The notes beneath the pieces were generated by a model. It did no database searches. It was not told the origin of the DNA and was given only the letters and a program-made list of their open reading frames with translations. Below, piece by piece: positions 2,068 to 45,290 of a stretch of 64,000 nucleotides of DNA. The DNA lies in the NCBI GenBank assembly GCA_002269645.1, contig NIVC01000312.1:124001-188000 (forward strand), read 5' to 3'. The first letter of the stretch is position 1. Every line of letters starts with the position of its first letter. This DNA is from Macrostomum lignano. Its lineage: Eukaryota. Position numbers and translations under genes: made by a program.

Positions 2068-2164
2068 ACATTATTCTGTATTCCAGTGCTTGATAAATTA
2101 ATATTTTTTATTGCGATAGTGACATTTCACTATCGAATCATCTGGTTGAAGGTCAGGGTTACAG

Positions 2165-3543
2165 TCAAATTGTCACTATAGACAGTCGAATTGTCACTGA
2201 CAGTCAAATTGTCACTGTAGACAGTCGAATTGTCACTGACAGTCAAATTGTCACTGTAGACAGTCGAATTGTCACTGACAGTCAAATTGTCACTGACAGT
2301 CAAATTGTCACTATAGACAGTCGAATTGTCACTATAGACAGTCAAATTGTCACTATAGACAGTCAAATTGTCACTGACAGTCAAATTGTCACTATAGACA
2401 GTCAAATTGTCACTGACAGTCAAATTGTCACTATAGACAGTCAAATTGTCACTATAGACAGTCAAATTGTCACTATAGACAGTCAAATTGTCACTATAGA
2501 CAGTCAAATTGTCACTATAGACAGTCAAATTGTCACTATAGACAGTCAAATTGTCACTGGCAGTCGAATTGTCACTATGGACAGTCAAATTGTCACTATA
2601 GACAGTCAAATTGTCACTATAGACAGTCGAATTGTCACTGGCAGTCAAATTGTCACTATGGACAGTCAAATTGTCACTATAGACAGTCGAATTGTCACTA
2701 TGGACAGTCGAATCGTCACTGGCAGTCAAATTGTCACTGGCAGTCGAATTGTCACTGGCAGTCAAATTGTCACTATGGACAGTCAAATTGTCACTATAGA
2801 CAGTCAAATTGTCACTGGCAGTCAAATTGTCACTGACAGTCAAATTGTCACTGACAGTCAAATTGTCACTATAGACAGTCGAATTGTCACTGGCAGTCAA
2901 ATTGTCACTGACAGTCAAATTGTCACTATGGACAGTCAAATTGTCACTATAGACAGTAAAATTGTCACTGACAGTCAAATTGTCACTATAGACAGTCAAA
3001 TTGTCACTATGGACAGTCAAATTGTCACTGACAGTCAAATTGTCACTGACAGTCAAATTGTCACTGACAGTCAAATTGTCACTGACAGTCAAATTGTCAC
3101 TATGGACAGTCAAATTGTCACTATAGACAGTCAAATTGTCACTGACAGTCAAATTGTCACTGACAGTCAAATTGTCACTGACAGTCAAATTGTCACTGAC
3201 AGTCAAATTGTCACTATAGACAGTCAAATTGTCACTGACAGTCAAATTGTCACTATAGACAGTCAAATTGTCACTATGGACAGTCAAATTGTCACTATAG
3301 ACAGTCAAATTGTCACTGACAGTCAAATTGTCACTGACAGTCAAATTGTCACTGACAGTCAAATTGTCACTGACAGTCAAATTGTCACTATAGACAGTCA
3401 AATTGTCACTATAGACAGTCAAATTGTCACTGACAGTCAAATTGTCACTGACAGTCAAATTGTCACTGACAGTCAAATTGTCACTGACAGTCAAATTGTC
3501 ACTGACAGTCAAATTGTCACTGACAGTCAAATTGTCACTGACA
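2165..3543. repeat. 18/21-bp minisatellite GACAGTCAAATTGTCACT(ATA)
   Basis: Two unit lengths are interspersed. The unit carries an internal inverted motif (TGACAGTCA). Confidence 0.97.
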
Positions 3544-4084
3544 GGCGGTTATAATTTTTATCTTGTCGATTTTTCTTAGTCAGGTTGACGGTTCAACTCT
3601 GTAAAGCTTGCCAGAAAATAGTTAGCTGTTTCGATTTTAAACCCCTATTACATTTACATAAATTGTTTAACCTTGTTGAAAATTGGAGTTACTTCAGTGT
3701 GTGTAAATGTGTTTTGGAATTTACTAAATAATGTCTGGTGTGTAGTCTGTAGTAATTAAATAGATTTTAATTGTTGTGTTTCAGAACTTTTTTATTCTAA
3801 ATTGCCTAAAAGTAATTCTTCCCTGAATAATTCAAAATCAAGTTGTGTAACACTGGCCCCAGGCAATTGTTATAATCTCGCATGCCCTATTTTAACTATT
3901 AAATCCACCGCATTAACTATTTTAATTCTATCCATTATGATTCATTTTTTGCTCGACTTGAACGAGGTACAATTTTTTATAGCTGTCTTTTGCTTCAATA
4001 AAATTCTAATTTTTATTCTCCTACTGAATTAATTTCCTAAGTTTGAAGCGAATAGTGAGTCTTGATTGTTTTGCCCGACCCGCA

Positions 4085-10600: not shown

Positions 10601-12305
10601 GTCTAATAGCCTCACTTGCTCTGTCCCTAATCATCTAATAGCCTCACTTGCTCTGTCCCTAATCATCTAATAGCCTCACTTACCGTGTCCCTAATCATCT
10701 AATAGCCTCACCTACTCTGTCCCTAATCATCTAATAGCCCCACAAAAAGTATATTCCACTGCAGTACAGTACATTCACTCACCACAATGAGAACGACCTT
10801 CAGTTTGCAGCAGGCGCCAACGCAGCCCAAAATGCTGCTGGCCAGAATAAATGCGCCAATTCCGAGGAGCACTATGCCGGCATAGCCTGCAATAGTTTTT
10901 GTAGAAAATTATTGTTTATTATGTTTATTCTGATGTCAGATGGTGCCTAAAACTAGATGTCAGATGGCGCCTTAAACTAGATGTCAGATGGCGCCTAAAC
11001 TGGATGTCAGATGGTGCCTAAAGCTAGATGTAAGATGGCGCCTAAAACTAGATGTCAGATGGCGCCTAAAACTAGATGTCAGATGGCGCCTAAAACTTGG
11101 TATCAGCTGGCGGCCTAAAACTAGATGTCAGATGGCGCCTAAAACTAGATGTCAGGTGGCGCCTAAAACTAGATGTCAGATGGCGCCTAAAACTAGATGT
11201 CAGATGGCGCCTAAACTGGATGTCAGATGGCGCCTAAAAATAGTGTCAGATGGCGCCTAAACTGGATATCAGATGGCGCCTAAAACTGGATTTCAGATGG
11301 CGCCTAAAACTGGATGTCAGATGGCGCCTAAAACTGGATGTCAGATGGCGCCTAAACTGGATGTCAGATGGCGCCTAAACTGGATGTCAGATGGCGCCTA
11401 AAACTAGATGTCAGATGGCGCCTAAAACTAGATGTCAGATGGCGCCTAAACTGGATGTCAGATGGCGCCTAAAAATAGTGTCAGATGGCGCCTAAAAATA
11501 GTGTCAGATGGCGCCTAAACTGGATATCAGATGGCGCCTAAAACTGGATTTCAGATGGCGCCTAAAACTGGATGTCAGATGGCGCCTAAAACTGGATGTC
11601 AGATGGCGCCTAAACTGGATGTCAGATGGCGCCTAAACTGGATGTCAGATGGCGCCTAAATCTGGGTTATCAAGGACAAACTCACTGACAATGGTTGACC
11701 AGCTGCCAAGTATTTTCTGCACATCCGCGATGCTCAGTTGCACATTCGAGCCGCCAACGTTGCTGCTGGCCAGGGAGGACAGTAGGCCGCTGAACAGCTG
11801 GTAGATGGCGCTGCCGCCGAAGTGGAGAAGGCAGCCGACAATGCCCAGCAGGATGCCAACAGTCTGGTGGCAGGTGCGGATCGAGAGTTGTTAGAGCCTA
11901 ATGCGATGTGATATCGGTCTCCTAAGAGCCTAATGCGATGTGATATCGGTCTCAGCTAAGAGCCTAATGCGATGTGATATTGGTCTCAGCTAAGAGCCTA
12001 ATGCGATGTGATATTGGTCTCAGCTAAGAGCCTAATGCGATGTGATACCGGTCTCAGCTAAGGGCCTAATGCGATGTGATGCCGGTCGATTTTTAGATTT
12101 TTAATCGATCGCCTAAGATCCTAATGGAATTAAAACTGATCTCCTAAGAGTCTAATGAACTTTGAAAGTTGGCTTGCTAGTAGTTTAATTTAATGTACTG
12201 CAATGTAATGCAGAAGGCCTTCTTCAAACTCACAATTAGCAGACTGTTCACGATGTACAGTATGCATGCAGCAATCTGGGAGGTGCAACAGCCGCAGGCG
12301 CCCAT
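7693..12305 (-). CDS. Tetraspanin A, 7 exons (12305-12234, 11863-11686, 10886-10783, 9847-9659, 9572-9479, 8370-8180, 7761-7693), about 298 aa
   Basis: Four TM segments; N-terminal MGACGCC; GCVGACC after TM2; ECCG and PLSCC..C..GC-type EC2 cysteines. All junctions are GT-AG and in phase. Confidence 0.92.
7818..8035. repeat. (CAGA)n microsatellite in tetraspanin A intron 6
   Basis: Directly visible. Confidence 0.95.
8526..9421. repeat. 25-bp minisatellite GGATCAGCTTCATCACCTTAATATA in tetraspanin A intron 5
   Basis: About 35 near-identical units. Confidence 0.97.
10585..10742. repeat. 32-bp minisatellite (about 5 units) in tetraspanin A intron 3
   Basis: Unit CTCTGTCCCTAATCATCTAATAGCCTCACTTG. 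Confidence 0.9.
10935..11660. repeat. 23/24-bp minisatellite GTCAGATGGCGCCTAAAACTAGAT in tetraspanin A intron 2
   Basis: Directly visible. Confidence 0.96.
11893..12085. repeat. 34-bp minisatellite in tetraspanin A intron 1
   Basis: Unit CTAAGAGCCTAATGCGATGTGATATTGGTCTCAG, about 5 copies. Confidence 0.9.
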
Positions 12306-13054: not shown

Positions 13055-13640
13055 CAAGTCTCATTAGGCTCTGACACTCCAGTCTTATCATTAGGCTCTG
13101 ACAATCAAGTCTCATTAGGCTCTGACACTCTAGTCTCATTACTAGGCTTTGACACTCAAGTCTCATTAGGCTCTGACACTCAAGTCTCATTACTAGGCTC
13201 TGACACTCAAGTCTCATTATTAGGCTCTGACACTCCAGTCTCATTATTAGGCTCTGACACTCCAGTCTCATTAGGCTCTGACACTCCAGTCTCATTAGGC
13301 TCTGACACTCCAGTCTCATTAGGCTCTGACATTCCAGTCTCATTAGGCTCTGACAATCCAGTCTCATTAGGCTCTGACACTCCAATCTCATTAGGCTCTG
13401 ACGCCCCAGTCTCATTAGGCTCTGACACTCGAGTCTCATTAGGCTCTGACAATCCAGTCTCATTAGGCTCTGACACTCCAGTCTCATTAGGCTCTGACAC
13501 TCCAGTCTCATTAGGCTCTGACACTCCAGTCTCATTAGGCTCTGACACTCCAGTCTCATTAGGCTCTGACACTCCAGTCTCATTAGGCTCTGACACTCCA
13601 GTCTCATTAGGCTCTGACACTCTAGTCTCATTATTAGGCT
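13055..13640. repeat. 24/27-bp intergenic minisatellite GTCTCATTAGGCTCTGACACTCCA
   Basis: Directly visible; it produces the VSLGSDTP ORFs. Confidence 0.96.
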
Positions 13641-17869: not shown

Positions 17870-19706
17870 ACCTCTCTCCCTCTCTACCTCTACCTCTCTA
17901 CATCTCTACCTCTCTCCCTCTCTCCCTCTCTACCTCTACCTCTCTACTTCTCTACTTCTCTCCCTCTCTCCCTCTCTCCCTCTCTCTCTCTCTCTACCTC
18001 TCTCCCTCTCTACCTCTACCTCTCTACTTCTCTCCCTCTCTCCCTCTCTCCCTCTACCTCTCTACTTCTCTACCTCTCTCCCTCTCTCCCTCTACCTCTC
18101 TACTTCTCTACCTCTCTCCCTCTCTACCTCTCTAACTCTTCTGTACCTCTCTACCTGTCTTCCTCTCTATATCTCTACCTCTACCTGAAGAGAGGGTTCC
18201 CCGTCGAGGAACCTGTGTCCGTGTACCTCTCTTCCTCTCTACCTCTCTTCCTCTCTACCCGTCTACCTCTCTACCCCTCTACCCTTCTTCCCCTCTATCT
18301 CTCTACCTCACTCCCTTTCAATCTCTCTTCTTTTTGTCCCCCTCTCCCTCTCTACCTCTCATTCACATTTAACAAATGAATCACATCGAGCTCACTTACT
18401 GACATAGACAGACCAGGTGCCCAGCACCTTCTGCAAATCGCTAAACGACAAAGGCGTGGAGGAACCAATCTGACTGCTGCCGATATTGGACAGGGCGGCG
18501 CTGAGTAGTTGAAATACCAGATTGCCGCCCCAGTGCAGAATGCACCCGATGATGGCCAGGACTACACCAATAGTCTGATCGATGGGTTGTGGAGTTGGCA
18601 CAGATGTGATAGTTAGTGTACATTATCTAGCAATGCTTTGTGTGCTGATTTGAGTACCTTTGCGGCGCTGCTTTGTAATGGCACCGGTTAGGACGGCGCC
18701 TTTTAGGACGGCGCCTTTTAGGACGGCGCCTTTTCGGACGGCGCCTTCTATGGTGGCGCCTTTCTAGGGTGGCGCCTTTCTAAGGTGGCGCCTTTCTAGG
18801 GTGGCGCCTTTCTAGGGTGGCGCCTTTCTAGGGTGGCGCCTTTCTAGGGTGGCGCCTTTCTAGGGTGGCGCCTTTCTAGGGTGGCGCCTTTCTAGGGTCG
18901 CGCCTTTCTAGGGTGGCGCCTTTCTAGGGTGGCGCCTTTCTAGGGTGGCTGCTTCTAGAGCGACGCTTTCTAGGGCGGCGCTTTCTAAGGTGGCGCTTTT
19001 TAGGGTGGCGCCTTCTACGAGGAAGCCTTCTAGGGTAGGGTGACGCCTTCTAGAGTGGCACCTTCTAGGGTGGCGCGTTTTAGAGTGGCGCCTTCTATGG
19101 TGGCGCCTTTCTAGGGTGGCGCCTTTCTAGGGTGGCGCCTTTCTAGGGTGGCGCCTTTTAGAGTGGCGCCTTCTAGGATAGGGTGGCGCCTTTCTAGGGT
19201 GGCGCCTTTCTAGGGTGGCGCCTTTCTAGGGTGGCGCCTTTCTAGGGTGGCTGCTTCTAGAGCGACGCTTTCTAGGGCGGCGCTTTCTAAGGTGGCGCTT
19301 TTTAGGGTGGCGCCTTCTACGAGGAAGCCTTCTAGGGTAGGGTGACGCCTTCTAGAGTGGCGCCTTCTAGGGTGACGCCTTCTAGAGTGGCGCCTTCTAG
19401 GGTGACGCCTTCTAGAGTGGCACCTTCTAGGGTGGCGCCTTTTAGAGTGGCGCCTTCTAGGATAGGGTGGCGCCTTTCTAGGGTGGCGCCTTTCTAAGGT
19501 GGCGCTTTTTAGGGTGGCACTTTCTATTGTGGCGCCTTGTAGGGGTGTCACCATAGAATTGAACCTCATGAAATTGAAACTGGCCAAACAAGCCAAGCCA
19601 GCTGCACACTTACAATCAGAATGCCGTTGATGGCTCCAAGCACGCATTTGGCCACCTGAGCGCTGCAGCAGGTGCACAGCTTAACGCAGCAAGAGCAAAC
19701 TCCCAT
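14410..19706 (-). CDS. Tetraspanin B, 7 exons (19706-19614, 18574-18400, 17335-17232, 16958-16776, 15532-15442, 15286-15093, 14469-14410), about 299 aa
   Basis: MGVCSCCVKLCTCC N-terminus, GAIGACC, VPCCG, PESCC, GGCY. Intron positions and phases are the same as in tetraspanin A. Confidence 0.92.
14490..15080. repeat. 11-bp minisatellite GATAGCTGTGT in tetraspanin B intron 6
   Basis: Directly visible. Confidence 0.96.
15780..16625. repeat. (AG)n / purine-rich compound repeat in tetraspanin B intron 4
   Basis: Directly visible. Confidence 0.95.
17040..17200. repeat. Degenerate 16-33-bp repeat (GATACTCGGACA core) in tetraspanin B intron 3
   Basis: Directly visible. Confidence 0.85.
17495..18360. 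repeat. CTCTAC/CTCTCC pyrimidine repeat in tetraspanin B intron 2
   Basis: Directly visible. Confidence 0.95.
18687..19540. repeat. 16-bp minisatellite TAGGGTGGCGCCTTTC in tetraspanin B intron 1, with an internal duplication of about 300 bp
   Basis: The variant block CTTCTAGAGCGACGC...GAGGAAGCC recurs at about 18953 and 19255. Confidence 0.95.
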
Positions 19707-22184: not shown

Positions 22185-24130
22185 TACAGGGAAGAGGGTA
22201 TGGGAAGAGGGTGTGGGAGAGGGTATGGTAGACAAGGTATGTCAGAGAGGGTATGTCAGAGAGGGTATGGTAGAGATGGTATGGTAGAGAGAAAATGGTA
22301 CATTGGGTATGGTAGAGAGGTTATGTCAGAGAGGGTATGGTAGAGAGGGTATGGTAGATTGGGTATGGTAGAGAGGATATGGTAGAGAGGATATGGTAGA
22401 GAGGATATGGTAGAGAGGATATGGTAGAGAGGATATGGTAGAGAGGATATGGTAGAGAGGGTATGGTAGAGAGGGTATGGTAGAGAGGATATGGTAGAGA
22501 GGATATGGTAGAGAGGATATGGTAGAGAGGATATGGTAGAGAGGATATGGTAGAGAGGGTATGGTAGAGAGGGTATGGTAGAGAGGATATGGTAGAGAGG
22601 ATATGGTAGAGAGGATATGGTAGAGAGGATATGGTAGAGAGGATATGGTAGAGAGGGTATGGTAGAGAGGATATGGTAGAGGGGATATGGTAGAGAGGGT
22701 ATGGTAGAGAGGATATGGTAGAGAGGATATGGTAGAGAGAATATGGTAGAGAGGGTATGGTAGAGAGGGTATGGTAGAGAGGATATGGTAGAGAGGATAT
22801 GGTAGAGAGGATATGGTAGAGAGGATATGGTAGAGAGGATATGGTAGAGAGGATATGGTAGATTGGGTATGGTAGAGAGGATATGGTAGAGAGGATATGG
22901 TAGAGAGGATATGGTAGAGAGGATATGGTAGAGAGGATATGGTAGAGAGGATATGGTAGAGAGGATATGGTAGAGAGGATATGGTAGAGAGGATATGGTA
23001 GAGAGGGTATGGTAGAGAGGGTATGGTAGAGAGGATATGGTAGAGAGGATATGGTAGAGAGGATATGGTAGAGAGGGTATGGTAGAGAGGATATGGTAGA
23101 GAGGATATGGTAGAGAGGGTATGGTAGAGAGGGTATGGTAGAGAGGGTATGGTAGAGAGGATATGGTAGAGAGGATATGGTAGAGAGGATATGGTAGAGA
23201 GGATATGGTAGAGAGGATATGGTAGAGAGGATATGGTAGAGAGGATATGGTAGAGAGGATATGGTAGAGAGGATATGGTAGAGAGGATATGGTAGAGAGG
23301 GTATGGTAGAGAGGGTATGGTAGAGAGGATATGGTAGAGAGGATATGGTAGAGAGGGTATGGTAGAGAGGGTATGGTAGAGAGGATATGGTAGAGAGGAT
23401 ATGGTAGAGAGGGTATGGTAGAGAGGGTATGGTAGAGAGGGTATGGTAGAGAGGATATGGTAGAGAGGATATGGTAGAGAGGATATGGTAGAGAGGATAT
23501 GGTAGAGAGGGTATGGTAGAGAGGATATGGTAGAGAGGGTATGGTAGAGAGGATATGGTAGAGAGGATATGGTAGAGAGGGTATGGTAGAGAGGGTATGG
23601 TAGAGAGGGTATGGTAGAGAGGATATGGTAGAGAGGATATGGTAGAGAGGATATGGTAGAGAGGATATGGTAGAGAGGGTATGGTAGAGAGGATATGGTA
23701 GAGAGGATATGGTAGAGAGGATATGGTAGAGAGGATATGGTAGAGAGGGTATGGTAGAGAGGGTATGGTAGAGAGGGTATGGTAGAGAGGATATGGTAGA
23801 GAGGATATGGTAGAGAGGATATGGTAGAGAGGATATGGTAGAGAGGATATGGTAGAGAGGGTATGGTAGAGAGGGTATGGTAGAGAGGGTATGGTAGAGA
23901 GGATATGGTAGAGAGGATATGGTAGAGAGGGTATGGTAGAGAGGGTATGGTAGAGAGGGTATGGTAGAGAGGGTATGATAAAGAAGCTATGGTAGAGAGG
24001 CAGAAAGGGTATGGTAGAGAGGGTATGTCAGAGAGGGTATGTCAGAGAGGGTATGTCAGAGAGGGTATGTCAGAGTGGGTATGTCAGAGAGGGTATGGTA
24101 TAGAGGGTATGGTAGATTGGGTAAGGTAGA
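22185..24130. repeat. 14-bp satellite ATGGTAGAGAGG(AT/GT), about 1.9 kb
   Basis: Directly visible, with two single-base variants interspersed. Confidence 0.97.
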
Positions 24131-24844
24131 GATGGTAAGAGAGGGTACTGGGGAGCGGGTCATTGGGGGTGGTTGAGACACAAGTGCAATATGAACAAGA
24201 ACATGGTTGAGCTAACAACTTAACAACCTAATTTCCATTGACAGCCAAAGCGCTTAGGAAACAGGAATAGCCGATTAGAACTAAAAAATCTTTCTGGGCA
24301 AAGATTGAGCCGCGCCCTGCCATTGTCACCCCCTTCAAGCCATGCACACGCAAGAAGAGCTCACCAGAGTGTTGCATGAGTCCAAGCAGGAAGCAGTAAG
24401 TGCCCCCCCCCCCGAGAATACATATAGCTACGTCCAATATGGTACAGACAAAAATTTCACTAAGGACGGTGAGGAAACGTACCTATGCTATTTGCATTTA
24501 AATGCATTTGTTGCTTTGTAAAAATTTATTGTACTGTTTACATTGACAACAGCTGTCGTTAAGGGTTCGTGCAGCCTTTAGTCAAAGTCAACTGATCTTA
24601 AAAGTACATTTGTAGATTTATAGATGTCAATGCACAATATTTTACGATTGAAAGATTTTTTCTAGCATTGGGTTTGTATAGCTGTGCAGTGATTCATTTA
24701 ACTTGTATTAAAAAGCTCAGAAAATACTCTAAGTAGCACAGTGCGCATTTTAGAAATCTAATTATGTGAATACTTTTCATTGCTGTGATTTCAAAAGTGA
24801 GGCTGAAGCTTACTGTTGTAAACTATATTCATATTGCACCGACC

Positions 24845-25757
24845 CCCACGCCCTAGCCCACACCCTACACTCACACTCTAGCCTCACACTCTAGCCTCAC
24901 ACTCTAGCCCCACACTCTAGCCCCACACTCTAGCCCCACACCCTACACTTACACTCTAGCCCCACACCCAGACCCACATTCTAGCCCCACACTCTAGCCC
25001 ACACTCTAGCCCACACTCTAGCCCCATAATCTAGCCCCACACCCTACTCCCACACCCTACACCCAAACTCTAGACAAACACTCTAGCCCCACACGATAGC
25101 CTCACACTCTCTGCATATAGTCTAACCCTAAGTCCCATACTCCAGCTAGTCCCATACTCCAGCTAGTCCCACACTCCAGCTAGTCCCAGACTACAGCTAG
25201 TCCCACACTCCAGCTAGTCCCACACTCCAGCTAGTCCCACACTCTAGCTAGTCCCATACTCCAGCTAGTCCCACACTCCAGCTAGTCCCACACTCCAGCT
25301 AGTCCCACACTCCAGCTAGTCCACACTCCAGCTAGTCCCAGACTACAGCTAGTCCCACACTCCAGCTAGTCCCACACTCCAGCTAGTCCCACACTCCAGC
25401 TAGTCCACACTCCAGCTAGTCCCACACTCCAGCTAGTCCCACACTCCAGCTAGTCCCAGACTACAGCTAGTCCCACACTCTAGCTAGTCCCACACTCCAG
25501 CTAGTCCCACACTCCAGCTAGTCCCAGACTACAGCTAGTCCCACACTCTAGCTAGTCCCAGACTACAGCTAGTCCCACACTCTAGCTAGTCCCAGACTAC
25601 AGCTAGTCCCACACTCTAGCTAGTCCCAGACTACAGCTAGTCCCACACTCCAGCTAGTCCCACACTCCAGCTAGTCCCACACTCCAGCTAGTCCCACACT
25701 CCAGCTAGTCCCACACTCCAGCTAGTCCCACACTCCAGCTAGTCCACACTCCAGCTG
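24845..25757. repeat. Adjacent C-rich minisatellites: about 13-bp CTCTAGCCCCACA, then 17-bp CTCCAGCTAGTCCCACA
   Basis: Directly visible. Confidence 0.93.
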
Positions 25758-26214
25758 GTCCTTAGCAACCCTATAAAAGTACAATAAAAGTGGTAGAATT
25801 GGCGGAACTCAAACTCAGCATGTCGTACTCAACCAGGATTGCCGATTCCAATTATCCAAAAAATATTCTTCCTCGAAAAAAATGGTTAATTTGCAATCAA
25901 AGCAAGTTTCATAAAGCAGTATATTGTTGCTATTGAAATCTCATTAAAATTTCCCAATCAAGTAGATAATTATAAGCTCCGGCAGCGGGTTTAAAAGATT
26001 TCGAGCTCCGTCGCTTAGAAAATAATTGTCGTGGCAACAATGATTGACAGGCTTTGTATATTGCAGCACGCGATGTCAAACTGATTGCAGTTTAACAAAG
26101 TCGCGTAATTAAAAAAATAGGGGAAAATTATTTCAGGTGCCCCGTCCCGTCTGACTACCGGATTTTATCGGATCTATTTTTATTTCCTGGGCTCTTATCT
26201 CCCTGCATCTTTTA

Positions 26215-27190
26215 GTTCCTGCATATCTAGTCACTTGCATCTATCTAGTAACTTGAATCTCATATCTAGTCACTTGAATCTCATATCTAGTCCCTTTATC
26301 TCAAATCTAGTGCCTTTATCTCATATCTAGTCCTTTATCTTATATCTAGTCCATTCATCTCATATCTAGTCCATTCATCTCATATCTAGTCCATTCATCT
26401 CATATCTAGTCCATTCATCTCATATCTAGTCCATTCATCTCATATCTAGTCCATTCATCTCATATCTAGTCCATTCATCTCATATCTAGTCCATTCATCT
26501 CATATCTAGTCCATTCATCTCATATCTAGTCCATTTATCTCATATCTAGTCCATTCATCTCATATCTAGTCCATTCATCTCATATCTAGTCCATTCATCT
26601 CATATCTAGTCCATTCATCTCATATCTAGTCCATTCATCTCATATCTAGTCCATTCATCTCATATCTAGTCCATTCATCTCATATCTAGTCCATTCATCT
26701 CATATCTAGTCCATTCATCTCATATCTAGTCCATTCATCTCATATCTAGTCCATTCATCTCATATCTAGTCCATTTATCTCATATCTAGTCACTTGAATC
26801 TCATATGCAGTCACTTGAGTCTCATATCTAGTCCCTTTATCTCAAATCTAGTGCCTTTATCTCATATCTAGTTCCTTTATCTTATATCTAGTCCATTCAT
26901 CTCATATCTAGTCCATTCATCTCATATCTAGTCCATTCATCTCATATCTAGTCCATTCATCTCATATCTAGTCCATTCATCTCATATCTAGTCCATTCAT
27001 CTCATATCTAGTCCATTTATCTTATATCTAGTCCATTCATCTCATATCTAGTCCATTCATCTCATATCTAGTCCATTTATCTCATATCTAGTCCCCTTCT
27101 CTCTTATCTAGTCCCTTAATCTCATATCTAGTCCCTTAATCTCATATTTAGTCCCCTTATCTGATATCTAGTCCCTTTATCTCATATCCA
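26215..27190. repeat. 20-bp minisatellite CATCTCATATCTAGTCCATT
   Basis: Directly visible; degenerate at both ends. Confidence 0.96.
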
Positions 27191-27521
27191 GTCTTTACAT
27201 GTACATCTCATAGTCATTAGAATTCATCAATTACCTACATCTCATACCCAATCTATCTCAAATTCCAAAGTATTGCAATATTTCTTCTCAGACACCTACA
27301 GGCCAGTAACAGATAAAACATCAGTGTTTTCATTGTTTACACTTTCATCAAACTTAATTGAATAGTAGAAAAGAACAGAAAAAACACCCGTGATAAACTG
27401 CAGTAATCTGTTGCAGAAGTATTGTGTGTTATTATTCCCATTAACCACACGATCAATAGACCCATTGTAAATGTAGATAATTTATTTTGTCTGCTCAAAC
27501 AGATTTATAATTTTTTCGGCG

Positions 27522-30500
27522 TCAGCCCAGCATGCAGGCTGTGCGGCCGATTCGACAGCGCTTTCGAATTTGATTGACAGCTCGGTCGCCTGCATCGTTG
27601 GCTCTCTCCTCTTTTTCAGGTTCTTCATCCTCTCGCAACTCTCGCAGTTTGGCCAGCAGTTGGCGAAGTTGCACCGACCAATGCGGATTATTGTTGCTGT
27701 CGGGCTGCACAATCACCGCCTCGATGCTAGCTGGTGCAGCCACGCCCGCTGGGGTGTCAGGCGTGTTAGGTAGGGGTCAGAGGATGTGTCAGATAGTTAC
27801 GAATTTGTTTCTTCAGGTGTCAGATATTTGTGATTAGGTGTCAGATACTAGTAATTGGGTGTCAGATGATGTCAGTGATTGGGTGTCAGATGTCAGTGAT
27901 TGGGTGTCAGATGTCAGTGATTAGGTGTCAGATGTCAGTGATTGGGTGTCAGATACTAGTAATTGGGTGTCAGATGATGTCAGTGATTGGGTGTCAGATG
28001 TCAGTGATTAGGTGTCAGATGTCAGTGATTAGGTGTCAGATGTCAGTGATTGGGTGTCAGATGTCAGTGATTGGGTGTCAGATATCAGTGATTGGGTGTC
28101 AGATGTCAGTGATTAGGTGTCAGATGTCAGTGATTGGGTGTCAGATGTCAGTGATTAGGTGTCAGATGTCAGTGATTGGGTGTCAGATGTCAGTGATTGG
28201 GTGTCAGATGTCAGTGATTAGGTGTCAGATGTCAGTGATTGGGTGTCAGATATCAGTGATTGGGTGTCAGATATCAGTGATTGAGTGTCAGATATCAGTG
28301 ATTGGGTGTCAGATATCAGTGATTGGTTGTCAGATGTCAGTGATTGGGTGTCAGATATCAGTGATTGGGTGTCAGATGTCAGTGATTGGGTGTCAGATGT
28401 CAGTGATTGGGTGTCAGATGTCAGTGATCGGGTGTCAGATGTCAGTGATCGGGTGTCAGATATCAGTGATCGGGTGTCAGATGTCAGTGATCGGGTGTCA
28501 GATGTCAGTGATCGGGTGTCAGATGTCAGTGATCGGGTGTCAGATGTCAGTGATCGGGTGTCAGATGTCAGTGATTGGGTGTCAGATGTCAGTGGTGAAT
28601 AATGAGTCACACATTAATAGCTGAGGTGTCAGATATGATAAATCCAGTGACAGATATAAGAGATTAAGCTACATTAGTCGAACAGATGGCTCAAACGCTG
28701 CATAGTCTGCAGTCCCAGTTTTAGGCTAGCTCGCACGCGCAAATCAGAGTCAGTGAAAATGATTTTGTGAACTTTCTTTTCAAACATAACGTAGCGAAAC
28801 GTCCTACAAAGTGATGTTGTACAGCCAGTCCTTGAGACATATTTTTTCAAATTTCCCTGGGTAAAAAGGGGAAGAGGGATAAGGAGGATCAATGGCCGAT
28901 AAGGCTCCCGATCTCTCCCGGAAGCTGAATGCTTTTGTCCTTCGCTGGACTTCATGCTATTAGATTGCTTGCGGAATTGTTAATGACAGTCGGTTTGGCG
29001 TGCAGAGGACCGCAACTCTGATACGGCTGCACGGATACAGCAGTTAATATGCTGCGAACGCAAAGTTAGACAGCTTCGTAATTGAGGTTGGAATGAATTC
29101 TAGTGCTGCAGTGGAGTTGGAGAGATTTAGCATGCATAAATTGAAGTGAGAAAGGACTGGAGTTGAGAGGAATTGAGAGATGAGAGGATAGAGAGATTGG
29201 AGGGAGAGATAAAGTCAAATTTTAAAGGACATAGAGTATGGCAGACAATTGGAAGCAAGACAGACAGACAGAAAGGAAAGTAGACGGGCAGAAAGGAAGG
29301 AGACAGAAGAAGGCAAGACAGGGTGGCAGACAGCAAGGGAGACAGGAAGGCAGACAGCAATGGAGACAGAAAGGCAGGCAGCAAGGGAGACAGGAAGGCA
29401 GACAGCAATGGAGACAGGAAGGCAGGCAGCGATGGAGACAGGAAGGCAGGCAGCAATGGAGACAGGAAGGCAGACAGCAATGGAGACAGGAAGGCAGACA
29501 GCATGGGAGACAGGAAGGCAGACAGCAATGGAGACAGGAAGGCAGACAGCATGGGAATCATGGGAAACAGGAAGGCAGACAGCAATGGAGACAGGAAGGC
29601 AGGCAGCAATGGAGACAGGAAGGCAGACAGCATGGGAGACAGGAAGGCAGACAGCAATGGAGACAGGAAGGCAGACAGCAATGGAGACAGGAAGGCAAGA
29701 CATCAATGGAGACAGGAAGGCAGGCAGCAATGGAGACAGGAAGGCAGACAGCAATGGAGACAGGAAGGCAGGCAGCAATGGAGACAGGAAGGCAGACAGC
29801 AATGGAGACAGGAAGGCAAGACAGCAATGGAGACAGGAAGGCAGGCAGCAATGGAGACAGGAAGGCAGACAGCAATGGAGACAGGAAGGCAGACAGCAAG
29901 GGAGACAGGAAGGTAGACAGCATGGGAGACAGGAAGGCAGACAGCAATGGAGACAGGAAGGCAAGACATCAATGGAGACAGGAAGGCAGGCAGCAATGGA
30001 GACAGGAAGGCAGACAGCAATGGAGACAGGAAGGCAGGCAGCAATGGAGACAGGAAGGCAGACAGCAATGGAGACAGGAAGGCAAGACAGCAATGGAGAC
30101 AGGAAGGCAGGCAGCAATGGAGACAGGAAGGCAGACAGCATGGGAGACAGGAAGGCAGACAGCAAGGGAGACAGGAAGGCAGACAGCAATGGAGACAGGA
30201 AGGCAAGACAGCAATGGAGACAGGAAGGCAGGCAGCAATGGAGACAGGAAGGCAGACAGCAATGGAGACAGGAAGGCAGACAGCAAGGGAGACAGGAAGG
30301 TAGACAGCATGGGAGACAGGAAGGCAGACAGCAAGGGAAACAGGAAGGCAGACTGGAAGAGACACTACAAAATGGTAAGCAGAGGTACAATCTGTGAGGC
30401 TGATTTTTAAAGATAATGGGAATAATCAGTGAGACTGACAGCAAAGATCTCGTGGCGATCAGCTGCCTCACCAATCAAAAGCATGACCTCGAAACAGACT

Positions 30501-30706
30501 TGGCATTATTCGAAAAAAAGGCAAAAAGGAAATCAAGGCTTGAATTGAACGCAAGAGATCAATAGATAAATATTGCGATGAGGTCAACTGTGAGTGAGCA
30601 CGCAAAATGATGTTTTACCTGCCAATTGAGGATAGGCCCAGCAGACACTGCTGAGCAGAGCTGACACACACATAATTGTTGCTAAGGCGAAGCTGTTGGC
30701 AGCCAT
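27522..30706 (-). CDS. Neuropeptide precursor, 2 coding exons (30706-30619, 27748-27522), 104 aa: signal peptide, acidic propeptide, then KR-CRIGRTACML-G-stop
   Basis: Exon 1 MAANSFALATIMCVSALLSSVCWAYPQLA|gtaaaa is hydrophobic with a small-residue cleavage site. A phase-1 intron joins it in frame to ccccag|CG. Dibasic site, two Cys and a terminal Gly. Confidence 0.78.
27815..28600. repeat. 21-bp minisatellite GTCAGATGTCAGTGATTGGGT in the neuropeptide-gene intron
   Basis: Directly visible. Confidence 0.96.
29320..30355. repeat. 23/24-bp minisatellite GACAGGAAGGCAGACAGCAATGGA in the neuropeptide-gene intron
   Basis: Directly visible; source of the ETGRQ/QWRQEGR ORFs. Confidence 0.96.
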
Positions 30707-31158
30707 GACCTCAAAACTATGCCAGTAAGTGACTGCAGACAGTGGGTGTTGACTCGCCTAGCAACGAGTCGGTTAAATAGCTTGCCCCCGGAGCAGCTGG
30801 CGATTGGCCCATCTCTGCTGGGCCACCCACGCTGAAGGGGAACTGCAAGCTCTAGATTAAGAATCCACTAATCCCATTAATTAGCAAACTCTGCTGCTGC
30901 TTGCAATTCCTCTGGGCCTTGAAGGGCTTGGCAACAAATTCTTTTTGACCGATTTTGAGCACGAATTCTTGCCATTCAAGCTTTTTAATTAGTTCCAAAT
31001 TCTTGAAAACATGCGTGCGACAAGCGGATGTTTGGTCCGTGTTTTGCATCCTTGATTAGCATTGTCTGGCTGCGGAAGGTCTGTTGATGGTCGTGACATT
31101 GACGGCAATGGCTGGGTAATTTGTCAAGATGAAATTGTAACTAGTTACTAATTGTTAC

Positions 31159-32935
<1,777 letters not shown>

Positions 32936-34346
32936 TAGATATATCGTACTTGTTCTATTGTTGCTCTGTTGCAATTTCTGCAACAAGCGGATTATCTTCA
33001 GCGCTGCAATTAGATTAACGGGAAAAATAAAATCGAAATAAACAGTCAGCTTGTGACTCCTGAATATTATCCAGTCAAATTTAATTACGTTTCTAAGCAC
33101 TTGACCAAAAGGCAAAACTGCAGTATAATAAATAAAATTTAAAACAAAGAACTGAGCTGAGGTCCTCAGTCGATAAGTGATTCTGATGGCGGTTGCAATG
33201 TCCCCAATTAAACGGGCTTCGTGCTTTTAGCTGCTGGGCTGCCATTTCAATTCGTTTCTTAGTTCCCGTGTGCGTGAGGCCCCCTCCCCCCCCCGCTGTT
33301 TGCTGCTGTCCTGCTTGTCCTTCCCATTAAAATTGGGAAATGCCTGCTTTGCCTGTCCCCTTGGATTTCGCCCTGCTTAGCCAGTCCGTCAGCCCGAACT
33401 GCCTATGCATTATCGTCGCGAGAGAGCGTCTCCCAGCCATGGCAGGAGCAGAAACTTATTTCAAAGTGAAGTCTCACCCACGCATGCTAGAGGCAACAAC
33501 TTAGCAACTCTTGGCATTTTTGGGGTTGGCTCAAGGCGATTTTAAACTAGAATTCTGGAGTCATTCTTTGTACACTACGTGTTTGTATTTTTTTGAGAAG
33601 TCGAGCATTCAGTGTAAGACACGGCCAATCATATTCAACGGCCATATGCTTCAACAATTGTCTATGGCCAAAACCATGAATGGGTGCAGGTATCGTCTGG
33701 TGAACTCTCCAGCTCTCTCCAGTGCCCATGTGCCATAGATCATTATATTAGACGGTGTTTTGACCATAGACGAAAGCAGAAACAGAAGCTACAGACATCT
33801 TTCAGGGGAAAAGAACTTTCCGAATGCCAGTAGAAATTGTAAAACTTTTTTCTATTGTGATTTAAAAGTAAATTCAGAACATGTTTAGGCTTCTAAGCTC
33901 ATATTCATGTTTATACAGTGCAATTATCTATATTTTGTACATAGAGCCTAGGAATTTTCATTATTACTAGCAGGCAAATTCCGTGTGGTAAGTATCGTAG
34001 AGACCCACCCTAATTATTAGCCTTCTTTTAAGTTACTAATTTTGCATTAACCAGCTCACAAGTCAGGGCTAAGAGTATCTATAACGCATCGGGGAATGAA
34101 GTTGACAAGCCAGGTCTCCTATTAGTTGAAGATCGCCTTGGATTATTTCTCTGCACCGTCTTTTTGGAGTTGGTTTGGAGGTGGAGGCAGTCAGTGGACA
34201 GCTGAAACTGAAACTGTGTGCAGAGTTGGATCGCCCTAATAAATTAGCTCAACAAACGACTACTTAGCTTACTTCAGAGAGGCTTCTGTGACCCAGCCAG
34301 CAACTACTTGAAGCTACTTGGGGAGAAAATTTAGCCTTCGTAAACA

Positions 34347-36307
34347 ATGCAGCAAGCTGTACGCATCCGCCTGTTGGAATGCGGCGTCTGCTTAGATGAG
34401 ATACAGGAGCCGCGAGCTCTCGACTGTTTGCACAGCTTTTGCCTGCGCTGTCTCCGAGGCCTACCCGGGGCTGACCAGGCCCGACTGTCATGTCCGCATT
34501 GTCGGCGTGTGACACGGAAACAGCCGGGAGAGCTGGAGAAAGACTTTCGCATTGAACAGGTGAACGAATTGTACTGTTTAACTTGGCTAGTGACTGCTTG
34601 ATCGGATTATAAAGGTCCATCTCTCACATGGAGCAGTAAGATGATGCAATGCTTCAGATAGATTGCTTTGACTATTGCTGTAGTTTACCTTAGGGTTCGT
34701 TATAAACGAGGTTGAAACGCTCTGCAGACCGCTCGCCAAGAATGTCTATGGCCGAAAGACCATTGAGTTTCGCTGAAGCGAGGTTGAAACGCAGGGCAGA
34801 CCGCTCGCCAAGAATGTCTATGGCCGAAAGACCATTGAGTTTCGCTGAAGCGAGGTTGAAACGCACGGCAGACCGCTTGCTAAGAATGTCTATGGCCAAA
34901 AGACCATTGAGTTTCGCTGAAGCGAGGTTGAAACGCACTGCAGACCACTCGCCAAGAATGTCTATGGCCAAAAGACCATTGAGTTTCGCTGAAGCGAGGT
35001 TGAAACGCACGGCAGACCGCTTGCTAAGAATGTCTATGGCCAAAAGACCATTGAGTTTCGCTGAAGCGAGGTTGAAACGCACTGCAGACCACTCGCTAAG
35101 AATTTCTATGGCCGAAAGACCATTGAGTTTCGCTGAAACGAGGTTGAAACGCACGGCAGACCGCTTGCTAAGAATTTCTATGGCCGAAAGACCTTTGAGT
35201 TTCGCTGAAGCGAGGTTGAAAGAGGCAGTTTCTCCTACTTTTGTAGCTACGAGCTTGTATTTCTATTTGTCAAAGCCTCTTTGGCTACATGTAGCGGATA
35301 CAGCAGCAGTCGCAGTTGCAACTGGGAGAGGTGCTCGGCTGATATCAAAGAAACCACCTATTTCAATGACGTTGACTTTCCCAAAATAACTCTCAACAAC
35401 GCCCAGAAAATGTTGAGTGACTTAAAGCAATGGTTGCTGTTACGGTTCTTATTAACGCCGTTAATGTTGTTTTCATTTAGCTTATGTTGTTGTTTCTGAT
35501 CTTTGTTAACTGTTGTTGTAGTTGCGTTTCTGTTTTTGTTATTGTTGTTGCCACTGTTGTTGCTTTGTTTACTGTTTTTTTACTTCTGTTGTTCTTGGTG
35601 AAACAAAAGCGTTGAATTGATTTTTAGTTACTTCTCCTTCGTAGGTGCGCGAGATGAAGCCGCTGGTTGTCCGCGGCCTCGAGCAGCTCAGCGCCGAGGC
35701 CACCACCCGGTCCAGCGAGATTCTGGCCAGCCTCATCGAGGAGGGCCACCTCAGCGGCGTCATCGCCGAGTGCGACCGTCAGTTGGCGCTCCTAGACGAC
35801 GACGAGATGGAATTCGACGCGGCATTTCGGCGCCACATGCGGCGCCTGGAACTGGCTGCCAGGCGGCACAGAGCCGACCTCACGTCGCAGATCGATCGGC
35901 GACGTCGACAGCTCCTAGCTAGGCGTCGATGGGCCGCCGAGACGCTGGATTCCAGAGCCGCGGCCGCCGAGGTGTTGGACAGGGTTCGACGAGGCGAGCA
36001 CGACTTGGTAGCTGGCCTGCTGCACCGCCTTCGGCCCGCCGTCGGGTCGGCCGGGGCGGCGCCGCCGCTAACGGAGCCGCGGCTGCCTGCCGGCGACGAG
36101 GGCCTCCGACGGCTCCGGCGCCTGCTGACCGAAGCTGCCTGTCGGCTGCTGGCCGACGATACCGAAGATGATGGCGACATTGCCAGCGGCGATGAGAGTC
36201 GAATCGATGACGAGGAGAGGAGTCTGGAGGCTGCGCAAGCCGCCTCCGCCAAATGGGGCAAGCTAGCCGCGGTGTCAAAGAAGGGCAGAGCGGACTTTGA
36301 CGAGTGA
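34347..36307 (+). CDS. C3HC4 RING plus coiled-coil protein (TRIM-like, no B-box seen), 2 exons (34347-34559, 35645-36307), about 291 aa
   Basis: CGVC-x11-CLHSFCLRC-x13-CPHC; phase-0 intron CAG|gtgaac...cgtag|GTG; helical E/R/L/A-rich second exon. Confidence 0.82.
34700..35222. repeat. 72-bp tandem repeat (about 7 units) in the RING-gene intron
   Basis: The 24-aa periodicity of both overlapping ORFs equals 72 bp. Confidence 0.95.
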
Positions 36308-41745: not shown

Positions 41746-44240
41746 CTGCAGCAGGAATTCATCCGACGCCACAGTCTCAGCAGCCAGCTGCGAGAAGATG
41801 AGGCCAGTGCAGGCCAAAACCAGTCCAACGGGCTGTCCGGTGACATCAGCCAGAAGGCCGGCCAGCTCCCGCAGACAGTTGCTAGGCCGTTGCTGGGCAG
41901 GCAGCAGGGCGGCTGCGCAGACAATAGGAGCCACGGTATGCAGGCAGAGCAGCCGACGCCGCCTTAGGCAATGGCCGTCAAGATTGGCTAATTGGCTGTC
42001 ATCGGCCCTGTACAGCAGGTCGCAGCGCCTGTAGCAGAAATTGATAATCCTGCGAAGCTGATCGAAAATCGACTGTCCGACAGTTAAAAATGCAAACCGG
42101 CGGCCCAGCTCGGCCAGATGATAGGCGGCTACCTCGACTGCGCAGTCGAAATTTAACGAATATTTCAGAGCGGCGAAGGCCAGTTGCTCTGTCTCCACGT
42201 ATTGGCGCCTCGCAGCCCGGCGGCTGTGCCCTGCCAGCGGCGGCACCCCCAGCAAGTCCAGCAAGTCGACAGCGTCGGTTTTGCCGAATAGAATTCGAGA
42301 AGCGCGCAGTTTCATGGCCAGCGAAAACGCCACGGTCAGCACTGTGAGCGGGAATTTGCGCCGGACAGACTGGAAAGTTATTAAGAAAAATATGAAGCTT
42401 TTTATTATTTCATTTAAGCTGACCTACTAGCGGTAGTAAAGTTTGCAAACGCTTAGAAATTCGATAAAAATACTTTACGACAAGACCATCTTAAGGTTGC
42501 TTATACCATTGTAATTGAATTCTCAAAGTAGTTTATGGCAGATTCTTTAAGGTAGTTCGGTGAGGCTCTGCAACCATGCAAACCATAACCCTAACTTAAA
42601 AACCATAACCCCAACCAAAAAACCATAAGCCAAAACAAAAACTATAGCCCTAACCTAAATAACCATAACACTAACCTAAAAACTAACACTCCTAACCTAA
42701 AAACCGAAACCTTTAACCCAAAAACCATAACGCTAACCTAAAATCATTATCCTAACCTAAATCCGAAACTTCTAACCTAAAAACTTAAACTCTTACTAAA
42801 AACCATAACCCTAACCTAAAAACCATAACCCTAACCTAAAAACCATAACCCTAACCTAAAAACCATAACCCTAACCTAAAAACCATAACCCTAACCTAAA
42901 AACCATAACCCTAACCTAAAAACCATAACCCTAACCTAAAAACTAACACTCCTAACCTAAAAACCGAAACCTTTAACCCAAAAACCATAACGCTAACCTA
43001 AAATCATTATCCTAACCTAAATCCGAAACTTCTAACCTAAAAACTTAAACTCTTACTAAAAACCATAACCCTAACCTAAAAACCATAACCCTAACCTAAA
43101 AACCATAACCCTAACCTAAAAACCATAACCCTAACCTAAAAACCATAACCCTAACCTAAAAACCATAACCCTAACCTAAAAACCATAACCCTAACCTAAA
43201 AACCATAACCCTAACCTAAAAACCATAACCCTAACCTAAAAACCATAACCCTAACCTAAAAACCATAACCCTAACCTAAAAACCATAACCCTAACCTAAA
43301 AACCATAACCCTAACCTAAAAACCATAACCCTAACCTAAAAACCATAACCCTAACCTAAAAACCATAACCCTAACCTAAAAACCATAACCCTAACCTAAA
43401 AACCATAACCCTAACCTAAAAACCATAACCCCAACCTAAAAACCATAACCCCAACCTAAAAACCATAACCCTAACCTAAAAACCATAACCCTAACCTAAA
43501 AACCATAACCCTAACCTAAAAACCATAACCCTAACCTAAAAACCATAACCCCAACCAAAAAACCATAAGCCAAAACAAAAACTATAGCCCTAACCTAAAT
43601 AACCATAACACTAACCTAAAAACTAACACTCCTAACCTAAAAACCGAAACCTTTAACCCAAAAACCATAACGCTAACCTAAAATCATTATCCTAACCTAA
43701 ATCCGAAACTTCTAACCTAAAAACTTAAACTCTTACTAAAAACCATAACCCCAACCTAAAAACCATAACCCCAACCTAAAAACCATAACCCCAACCTAAA
43801 AACCATAACCCCAACCTAAAAACCATAACCCCAACCTAAAAACCACAACCCTAACCTAAACCAGAAGATAGTTTCACCTGGCTACTCCGCCGGAACGGGA
43901 AGCGATTCCCCCACTCCACGCAGATCCAGTACCGCAGCAGCCGGCAGAAGATTTCCACAGCTAGCCTGGCAACACCGCCGGACAGTCTCAGCAGGCGACA
44001 GATCGTGAACAGCAGACGAGCTGATTCGGCGATAGTCTGCTGAAGCCGGGCATCCAGCCGGCCGCAGCGGATTAAATAAACATTTAGCGACCGATCCCGG
44101 GGACGACAAACTCCTGTGGCCAGCTGGGGAAACCGACGACCAGTGATGTCGATAAGACCCGGCGGCAGCCAGGGAGGCGGGCGAGAAGTCGGCAGCTGGA
44201 GAAGATAGCAAGCTATCGACATACGGATTATGCCGTGCAC
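41743..44240 (-). CDS. CNTD1: Cyclin N-terminal domain protein, CNTD1/COSA-1-like (exons about 44240-43878 and 42369-41743; start codon uncertain)
   Basis: LLFTICRLLRLSGGVARLAVEIFCRLL, RKFPLTVLTVAFSLAMKL, ETEQLAFAALKYSLN and LADVTGQPVG follow the motif order I recall for CNTD1 (YQAVEILERF, NKFTLRLVSCVQLASKL, ESELDVLKSLNF, LQSITG). Phase-0 intron. Confidence 0.68.
42585..43860. repeat. 20-bp telomere-like minisatellite AACCATAACCCTAACCTAAA in the CNTD1-like intron
   Basis: Contains CCCTAA in most units. A degenerate block recurs at about 42.6, 42.94 and 43.55 kb. Confidence 0.95.
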
Positions 44241-44424
44241 TCTTCTGGTGTCGTTGCCGCCGTCGCTGCTGCCATTGTCGCTTTTGTGAAGCCTGTGGAT
44301 GCTGCCACGTTGCGGGCGACGGCTGCTGCTGAAAGTTAGCAGACGGAGAGCTCATTAGCACAGAAAATGTGCAATAGAGCCTGCACTGCAACAGAAGCGA
44401 CGTTTTATAAGGTCGACAGTTTAA

Positions 44425-45290
44425 CTGCTAGGGTGCACCTGAGTAACTGCTAGGGTGCACCTGAATAACTGCTAGGGTGCACCTGATTAACTGCTAGGGT
44501 GCACCTGATTAACTGCTAGGGTGCACCTGATTAACTGCTAGGGTGCACCTGATTAACTGCTAGGGTGCACCTGATTAACTGCTAGGGTGCACCTGATTAA
44601 CTGCTAGGGTGCACCTGATTAACTGCTAGGGTGCACCTGATTAACTGCTAGGGTGCACCTGAATAACTGCTAGGGTGCACCTGAATAACTGCTAGGGTGC
44701 ACCTGAATAACTGCTAGGGTGCACCTGAATAACTGCTAGGGTGCACCTGAATAACTGCTAGGGTGCACCTGAATAACTGCTAGGGTGCACCTGAATAACT
44801 GCTAGGGTGCACCTGAGTAACTGCTAGGGTGCACCTGAGTAACTGCTAGGGTGCACCTGAATAACTGCTAGGGTGCACCTGAATAACTGCTAGGGTGCAC
44901 CTGAGTAACTGCTAGGGTGCACCTGAATAACTGCTAGGGTGCACCTGAATAACTGCTAGGGTGCACCTGATTAACTGCTAGGGTGCACCTGAATAACTGC
45001 TAGGGTGCACCTGATTAACTGCTAGGGTGCACCTGAATAACTGCTAGGGTGCACCTGATTAACTGCTAGGGTGCACCTGATTAACTGCTAGGGTGCACCT
45101 GATTAACTGCTAGGGTGCACCTGATTAACTGCTAGGGTGCACCTGATTAACTGCTAGGGTGCACCTGATTAACTGCTAGAGTGCACCTGATTAACTGCTA
45201 GGGTGCACCTGAATAACTGCTAGGGTGCACCGGAGTAACTGCTAGGGTGCACCTGAATAACTGCTAGGGTGCACCTGAAACTTCACCTGA
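44425..45290. repeat. 22-bp minisatellite TAACTGCTAGGGTGCACCTGAW directly upstream of the CNTD1-like gene
   Basis: About 39 units with a palindromic GGTGCACC core. Confidence 0.97.

Follow-up and report, generated by a model that had tools for sequence, protein, structure and literature searches.

A predicted prohormone for a disulfide-looped, amidated decapeptide in the flatworm Macrostomum lignano

Does a reading frame split over two exons, and ending in a small cysteine-looped peptide, correspond to a genuine prohormone gene, and if so, to which peptide family would its product belong? The question was raised by a stretch of 64,000 nucleotides of the Macrostomum lignano genome (contig NIVC01000312.1 of assembly GCA_002269645.1, positions 124,001 to 188,000), which will be called the window hereafter. 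A first-pass annotation of the window, made from its letters, had described a signal-peptide exon splicing in frame, across an intron that holds two minisatellites, to an acidic propeptide followed by RKR and a terminal CRIGRTACML-Gly-stop, and had proposed that the locus encodes a new cyclic amidated neuropeptide. Each of these elements was found on the minus strand at the position that had been assigned to it. We report below that this is a real gene, and that it probably encodes, judging from its sequence, a lineage-restricted, secreted prohormone of 104 amino acids (aa) for a disulfide-looped, amidated decapeptide, which would act as an intercellular signal.

The gene and its predicted product

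The gene is made of two exons on the minus strand, exon 1 (30706-30619) being joined to exon 2 (27748-27522). The spliced open reading frame (ORF) has 312 nt followed by the TGA stop codon (27524-27522), and its product of 104 aa is MAANSFALATIMCVSALLSSVCWAYPQLAAGVAAPASIEAVIVQPDSNNNPHWSVQLRQLLAKLRELREDEEPEKEERANDAGDRAVNQIRKRCRIGRTACMLG. The precursor consists, in this order, of the predicted signal peptide MAANSFALATIMCVSALLSSVCWA, the spacer YPQLAAGVAAPASIEAVIVQPDSNNNPHWSVQLRQLLAKLRELREDEEPEKEERANDAGDRAVNQI, RKR, CRIGRTACML, a Gly and the stop. The ATG (30706-30704) is found in a good Kozak context (GAGGTCATGG), and the leader of 39 nt upstream is devoid of ATG. Exon 1 is 88 nt long, and the donor that follows position 30619 is GTAAAA (GTAAAACA); without splicing at 30619, the frame of exon 1 would hit a stop 11 codons further on. 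On the other side of the intron, the acceptor AG (27750-27749) comes after a pyrimidine-rich tract (...CTGACACCCCAG, then the CG of exon 2), with a branch-point-like CTAAC motif placed 18 nt 5′ of exon 2. This intron, the only one of the gene, has a length of 2,870 nt, is of the GT-AG type and of phase 1, and splits codon 30. The acidic character that had been attributed to the propeptide was borne out by counting, with 12 Asp or Glu against 7 Lys or Arg in the spacer.

When the spliced query was compared to 5.8 billion proteins, it matched, over its whole length and with 100% identity, a GenBank protein of 117 aa (PAA71115.1 / PAA85611.1) whose name is "hypothetical protein BOX15_Mlig034016g2". 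This protein is carried by two contigs of GCA_002269645.1, one of them being the contig of the window, and the 13 residues that it has in addition at the N-terminus result from in-frame reading of the 5′ leader. The annotated start of the gene (position 6001 of locus L003) is position 30745 of the window, and the 5′ end of the transcript is therefore at about 30745. The annotation of GCA_002269645.1 was built only from a genome-guided RNA-seq transcriptome, using StringTie/TACO, TBONE and TransDecoder, with TBONE boundaries drawn from trans-splicing and poly(A) reads (PMC5730564). Transcript evidence for the 30619/27748 junction was among the checks that the first-pass annotation had proposed, and since the GenBank annotation derives solely from RNA-seq transcripts, such evidence exists for the junction in an indirect form. 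The existence of a spliced, polyadenylated transcript for the gene is likewise indirectly supported. We conclude that this is a real two-exon M. lignano gene, spliced as proposed. It had also been remarked that the ORF track misses the gene because it is split; annotation, however, had not overlooked it, the exact spliced model being already present in GenBank as a hypothetical protein (PAA71115.1, PAA85611.1; PAA87901.1 for the duplicate presented below). What was already known is thus the gene as a GenBank hypothetical protein, and what is new is its reading as an apparently lineage-restricted prohormone for a looped amidated peptide. The peptide string and the gene identifiers were absent from papers in the searchable literature, and the identifiers were also absent from the text-searchable supplements of M. 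lignano expression studies.

The predicted layout of the precursor, with a signal peptide, an acidic spacer, a single tribasic site, a C-terminal Cys-x6-Cys peptide, a Gly and a stop, is supported as that of a prohormone. The signal peptide was called from hydropathy and from the (-3,-1) rule applied by eye: residues 6-22 have a mean Kyte-Doolittle hydropathy of 2.14 (2.21 in the duplicate L001), and positions -3 to -1 are occupied by Cys-Trp-Ala, which is kept in the duplicate. According to the pathway that we propose, signal peptidase would remove the signal peptide, probably after Ala24, and a convertase of the PC2 type would cleave after Arg-Lys-Arg (residues 91-93). Peptidylglycine alpha-amidating monooxygenase would then amidate the Leu at the cost of Gly104, and a disulfide between Cys1 and Cys8 would close a loop of six residues. 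PC2-dependent prohormone processing and amidation both occur in flatworms, in which many amidated peptides are found (PMC2953531). The end product would be cyclo(1-8)-CRIGRTACML-NH2, a decapeptide predicted to be cationic (two Arg, with the N-terminus free and the C-terminus amidated, for a calculated pI of about 9). With the Cys1-Cys8 disulfide and the C-terminal amide, its calculated monoisotopic [M+H]+ is 1120.554 and its [M+2H]2+ 560.78. Such a decapeptide would most likely serve as an intercellular signal, either a neuropeptide or a peptide hormone, with a receptor that is presumably a G protein-coupled receptor. We infer every processing step, as well as the disulfide, the amide, the signalling function and the producing cell type, from sequence. 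The initial proposal of a neuropeptide prohormone is retained in so far as a real spliced gene with a prohormone layout is concerned; the neuropeptide identity itself keeps the status of a proposal.

Copies of the gene and pattern of divergence

A prohormone-like end of this kind may arise by chance. The motif [KR][KR]-C-x6-C-x0-4-G-stop occurred once across the six frames of the 64-kb window, for an expectation of 0.035 per first-order Markov resample of the window. Such an end is rare per window, but at this rate it would recur by chance hundreds of times per genome, so that the motif alone proves nothing. The case for something beyond chance rests on three independent lines, which are the GenBank annotation, the intact copies of the gene and their pattern of divergence.

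Three intact copies were found in the M. lignano genome, in the window, in L002 (NIVC01001185.1) and in L001 (NIVC01000212.1), and the start codon, donor, acceptor, stop and AATAAA are common to all of them. The product of L002 is identical to that of the window, with one synonymous change, GGC>GGT at Gly97, within the peptide; as the rest of L002 shows 95-98% identity to the window, it corresponds to an allelic or a very recent duplicate. L001 encodes a duplicate of 101 aa (PAA87901.1), 79% identical to the window protein, in which the phase-1 intron is also present and the RKR and Gly-stop end is unchanged. The L001 and window loci are colinear over more than 10 kb and are recent duplicates of the whole region. 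Colinearity of L001 at 87-95% identity is in keeping with the redundancy known for the DV1 assembly of M. lignano.

Differences between L001 and the window are unevenly distributed along the coding sequence (CDS). In the part of the CDS located 5′ of the terminal block, 36 of 240 aligned nt differ, to which a 9-nt in-frame deletion is added. From DRAVNQIRKRCRIGRTACMLG to the stop (DRAVNQIRKR-CRIGRTACMLG-stop), none of the 66 nt differs (Fisher p = 1.4e-4 compared to upstream), and the same is true of the 45 nt from RKR to the stop taken alone (p = 0.004). The first differences encountered after the invariant block lie 5 nt past the stop. The spacer evolves close to neutrality (pN 0.089, pS 0.116, pN/pS about 0.77). 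The peptide and its cleavage site are therefore more conserved than the spacer in this comparison, made only with the same-genome duplicate L001. An invariant terminal peptide and cleavage site beside a fast-changing spacer is the classic signature of a peptide precursor.

The same data bear on a first alternative, in which the gene is a young ORF that is transcribed but has no important function, its prohormone-like end being coincidental and the identity of its copies resulting from recent duplication or gene conversion. The hundreds of chance motifs expected per genome are in its favour, as are a pN/pS of about 0.7 over most of the CDS, C-terminal synonymous sites that are unchanged as well, and the fact that no homologues were found elsewhere. 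It accounts poorly for the ORF, start, splice sites, stop and poly(A) signal having been kept in three copies despite 15% divergence. The upstream indels are moreover in frame (the 9-nt deletion) or compensated, the hydrophobic core of the signal peptide is retained, and the invariant block stops just beyond the stop codon. On balance, a young ORF of this kind appears to us quite unlikely.

A second alternative accepts a secreted peptide but gives it a non-neuronal role, as an antimicrobial, gland or seminal-fluid peptide, with an acidic propiece that would neutralise the cationic looped peptide until secretion. Short cationic Cys-looped C-terminal antimicrobial peptides do exist, among them bactenecin and the "Rana box" peptides of frogs, and many gland and seminal-fluid transcripts of M. 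lignano are specific to its lineage. The pairing of an acidic spacer (12 Asp or Glu) with a cationic peptide (pI about 9) would suit this role, and so would the lack of any orthologue found outside the species and the fast evolution of the rest of the gene, as often seen in defence and reproductive proteins. Yet ten residues are very short for membrane activity, and the usual pattern in defence or seminal peptides, where the mature part diverges most, is the reverse of the one found here, where no block other than the mature part is invariant. A single dibasic site together with a C-terminal Gly is in addition the classical signature of neuropeptides. We consider a non-neuronal role unlikely, although it deserves to be kept in mind.

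Homologues were also searched for. With the full-length query, nothing but the gene itself and the M. lignano duplicate was matched among the 5.8 billion proteins, and an HMMER profile of both proteins retrieved only the duplicate from 1.84 billion representatives. By our estimate, an identical peptide of 13-17 residues would probably have reached E <= 10 in the search of 5.8 billion proteins. Each of the M. lignano proteins forms a single-member cluster, from NCBI-derived sources only. Pfam returned only noise at E <= 10, and no match was found among PDB sequences. Six 4-mers drawn from the peptide and the cleavage junction, one of them spanning the cleavage site, had 0 matches in the tables of 51 planarian prohormones; no 5-mer was matched in the small supplement of a study on cestode npp, and no Cys-looped amidated class was present among the planarian peptide families listed.

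Several points weigh against a prohormone. Besides the peptide itself, synonymous sites of the C-terminal block are unchanged too (0 of about 17, compared to L001), and the only sequence available for comparison is a recent duplicate in the same genome, with 87-95% identity in the non-coding DNA around it. Because the whole region was recently duplicated, the comparison of divergence between L001 and the window is of limited power, and the C-terminal identity of the copies may be due to local gene conversion or to chance. The signal peptide rests on simple rules, and its n-region is without a basic residue. A peptide of 10 residues that contains two internal Arg could be processed in another way than the one proposed. 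Finally, no homologue was found outside M. lignano in the collections of 5.8 billion proteins and 1.84 billion representatives, from which other macrostomid transcriptomes are apparently missing; since even M. lignano RNA assemblies do not appear in the collections, this absence is weak evidence. Taking these points into account, we still favour, with the reserve already expressed, a prohormone for a looped signalling peptide.

Other differences between the copies were recorded. The intron measures 3,814 nt in L002 (6128-9941) and 2,714 nt in L001 (6089-8802), compared to 2,870 nt in the window, mainly as a result of minisatellite copy number; the intronic minisatellites are also present in L001 and L002, with different copy numbers (24-nt array). 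Codons 3-7 of the signal peptide are wholly different (ANSFA versus VCQLC, around a common CAGCT), apparently reshuffled by compensating small indels, with the hydrophobic core kept. Between positions 5930-6000 of L001 and the leader of the window gene (30707-30745), insertions of 3 nt and 27 nt are found in the duplicate. In the flanks of the duplicate loci are found, for L001, a tetraspanin gene and one of the syntaxin-6 type and, for L002, a small RING-finger gene. Conservation of the promoter was envisaged as regulatory evidence and discarded: identity to L001 is about 95% over the 250 nt upstream, and it is equally 93-95% in the surrounding non-coding DNA. The TATTTAA element, aligned with L001 and L002, is identical in the duplicate locus. 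Since the background identity is about 95%, neither upstream identity nor the conservation of TATTTAA is informative on regulation.

Relation to known peptide families

The first-pass annotation had hesitated between a divergent member of the allatostatin-C (ASTC) or CCHamide families and a lineage-specific family. ASTC is a single peptide found at the C-terminal end of its precursor after a basic site, and an amidated paralogue, AstCCC, is known in arthropods. In protostomes, the ASTC loop always has six residues, with Asn in most and FxP in many and "no strictly conserved motif", and its first residue is aliphatic in molluscs and annelids, aromatic in arthropods and nematodes (PMC9048919). 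The M. lignano peptide is similar in that its C-RIGRTA-C loop has six residues, and in that it is the single C-terminal peptide of a precursor of about 100 aa, with a basic site before the peptide. The differences are more numerous. The absence of Asn noticed in the first reading was confirmed for the RIGRTA loop, which lacks Phe and Pro as well and so has no FxP; the residue after Cys1 is Arg, and not an aliphatic or aromatic residue; two residues, Met-Leu, follow Cys2, compared to one aromatic residue in ASTC; and the intron is of phase 1, whereas a proregion intron of phase 0 is common in ASTC. Four of the six features compared (Asn, FxP, first loop residue and intron phase) thus failed, and filing the peptide as ASTC was rejected on these four.

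A highly divergent flatworm orthologue of ASTC, acting on a receptor of the somatostatin/allatostatin-C type, is a third alternative to which this comparison is relevant. The single C-terminal peptide after a basic site, and a loop of exactly the size that is invariant in protostome ASTC, would both be explained, and divergence of this extent is conceivable in a family that has no strict motif and in which amidation is found in AstCCC. No profile or sequence similarity was detected, and the sequence and intron-phase criteria failed, which makes such an orthologue very unlikely in our opinion.

CCHamide, GGNG and elevenin peptides are, like the product predicted here, short, disulfide-looped and C-terminally amidated, the loop and the amide of the M. 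lignano peptide both being putative. C-x6-C spacing is also found in CCHamides. Peptides of the CCHamide type are located at the N-terminal end of their precursors, either directly after the signal peptide or following a dibasic site that comes next to it, and a dibasic site comes after them; CCHamides proper end in His-amide, and GGNG and echinoderm members are without this His (PMC5627052). In the M. lignano precursor the layout is the opposite, the peptide being at the extreme C-terminus, after a spacer of 66 residues. Its predicted end is Met-Leu-amide and not His-amide, and the lack of a terminal His that had been pointed out in the first reading was indeed observed, Met-Leu preceding the Gly. 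Because GGNG and echinoderm members lack His as well, the missing His-amide is not decisive alone. Membership of the CCHamide family was rejected on the precursor layout and the C-terminal His-amide, both of which failed.

A resemblance to MCH was noticed by eye, the loop starting with C-x-[IL]-G-R-[TV] as in vertebrate MCH; it is a lead and not a test. MCH, somatostatin and urotensin-II precursors also have a signal peptide, a spacer, a dibasic site and one Cys-looped C-terminal peptide, and in peptides of the MCH type Cys1 is followed by Met or Ile, a basic residue stands two positions ahead of Cys2 and the loop comprises 8-10 residues (PMC4772807). The M. lignano peptide differs in having Arg next to Cys1, Thr at the position two ahead of Cys2 and six residues in its loop. 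MCH peptides are moreover non-amidated and known only from deuterostomes, and the WK motif of SSRP-like peptides is absent here. MCH membership was rejected on these published features, despite the C-x-[IL]-G-R-[TV] resemblance.

Short disulfide-looped amidated peptides are also encountered in CNMamide and CCAP/conoCAP. CNMamide has two residues between Cys2 and the amide, and the loops of CNMamide and CCAP/conoCAP are of 4-5 residues, FCN or CNM motifs being conserved in these peptides. Neither motif is present in the M. lignano peptide. To our knowledge, CNMamide is known only from arthropods. With flatworm prohormones (npp, spp and npy of Schmidtea mediterranea, npp of parasitic species) the M. 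lignano precursor would have in common a small size, secretion, basic sites, Gly as the amide donor and PC2 processing (PMC2953531).

We conclude that the peptide falls outside all the families for which a test was possible. Its closest functional analogues would be C-terminal cyclic peptides such as ASTC, somatostatin, urotensin II and MCH, with an amidation comparable to that of AstCCC, CCHamide and CNMamide. Of the two possibilities initially considered, the lineage-specific one is thus favoured, the criteria for ASTC and for CCHamide having failed. More precisely, we put forward, as a tentative proposal with slightly less than an even chance of being right, that the peptide founds a family of cyclic amidated neuropeptides that had not been described before, is confined to macrostomids or flatworms and has its own receptor; an extremely divergent flatworm counterpart of ASTC, long missing, is less likely.

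M. lignano is a flatworm model in which transgenesis, RNA interference and routine in situ hybridisation are available, and no neuropeptide catalogue for this species turned up in the searchable literature. With its short, easily synthesised peptide, tiny gene and compact upstream region, the locus would be suitable as a marker of peptidergic cell types, and the peptide would be a ready ligand for receptor deorphanisation. The gene also bears on the distribution of cyclic C-terminal peptides (of the allatostatin-C, somatostatin and MCH types) across Spiralia. If either a new family or a divergent ASTC turned out to be true, a Cys-looped amidated peptide would be present in a phylum whose catalogued neuropeptides, among readable lists, are almost all linear. 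If restricted to macrostomids, the gene would illustrate how a neuropeptide gene can originate within one lineage. Its broader significance is modest, as orphan prohormone candidates are frequent and the mechanism is not unusual.

Feature coordinates and surrounding sequence

The coordinates of the features of the gene are collected in Table 1.

Table 1. Features of the candidate prohormone gene and of its immediate flanks, in window coordinates
Feature	Position	Strand	Remarks
CCAAT motif	30803..30807	-	about 60 nt 5′ of the 5′ end of the model; putative promoter element
TATA-like element TATTTAA	30773..30779	-	28-34 nt 5′ of the first base of the transcript-derived model; putative promoter role
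5′ leader of annotated model	30707..30745	-	open 5′ extension PLSAVTYWHSFEV in GenBank, hence "partial"
Start codon and predicted signal peptide, residues 1-24, MAANSFALATIMCVSALLSSVCWA	30635..30706	-	predicted cleavage after VCWA (-3 Cys, -1 Ala)
End of exon 1, start of propeptide: YPQLA and first base of codon 30	30619..30634	-	
Phase-1 GT-AG intron	27749..30618	-	CTAAC at 27769-27765
24-nt intronic minisatellite	29287..30353	.	about 44 copies
21-nt intronic minisatellite	27816..28594	.	about 37 copies
Acidic spacer/propeptide of exon 2, residues 30-90	27567..27748	-	
RKR, residues 91-93	27558..27566	-	only di- or tribasic site of the precursor; presumed convertase site, putative cleavage
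Predicted mature peptide CRIGRTACML	27528..27557	-	
C-terminal Gly (Gly104, putative amide donor) and TGA stop	27522..27527	-	
AATAAA polyadenylation signal	27481..27486	-	begins 36 nt past the last base of the stop codon

Tandem repeats make up a large share of the 64 kb. A (TAGA)n microsatellite (31159-32941; about 446 units, 1.8 kb, 96% matches) starts about 410 nt upstream of the point where the transcript begins. The window contains more than 25 distinct minisatellite arrays, with periods of 11-72 nt and tens of copies each, for instance at 1-1750, 2161-3544, 8526-9421, 10932-11665, 13057-13633, 18695-19544, 22217-24132, 25131-25761, 26257-27193 and 44421-45278. An extreme GC skew (0.93) at 22217-24132 is due to the 14-nt array found there. 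Another array (42580-43860), with about 64 copies of a 20-nt unit, AAACCATAACCCTAACCTAA, that includes the telomere-type hexamer CCCTAA, may be an interstitial array derived from telomeres.

Most of the long "ORFs" seen in the six frames of the window arise from these minisatellites. The ORF at 58393-58923 (+) contains an Integrase_H2C2 zinc-binding domain (E = 5e-15), matches the rve integrase core weakly, and is probably a remnant of a retrotransposon. Four long non-repetitive ORFs of 155-266 aa, without a Pfam match, are located at 35645-36307 (+), 46489-47839 (-), 60718-61482 (-) and 62650-63450 (+), and are probably exons of other M. lignano genes.

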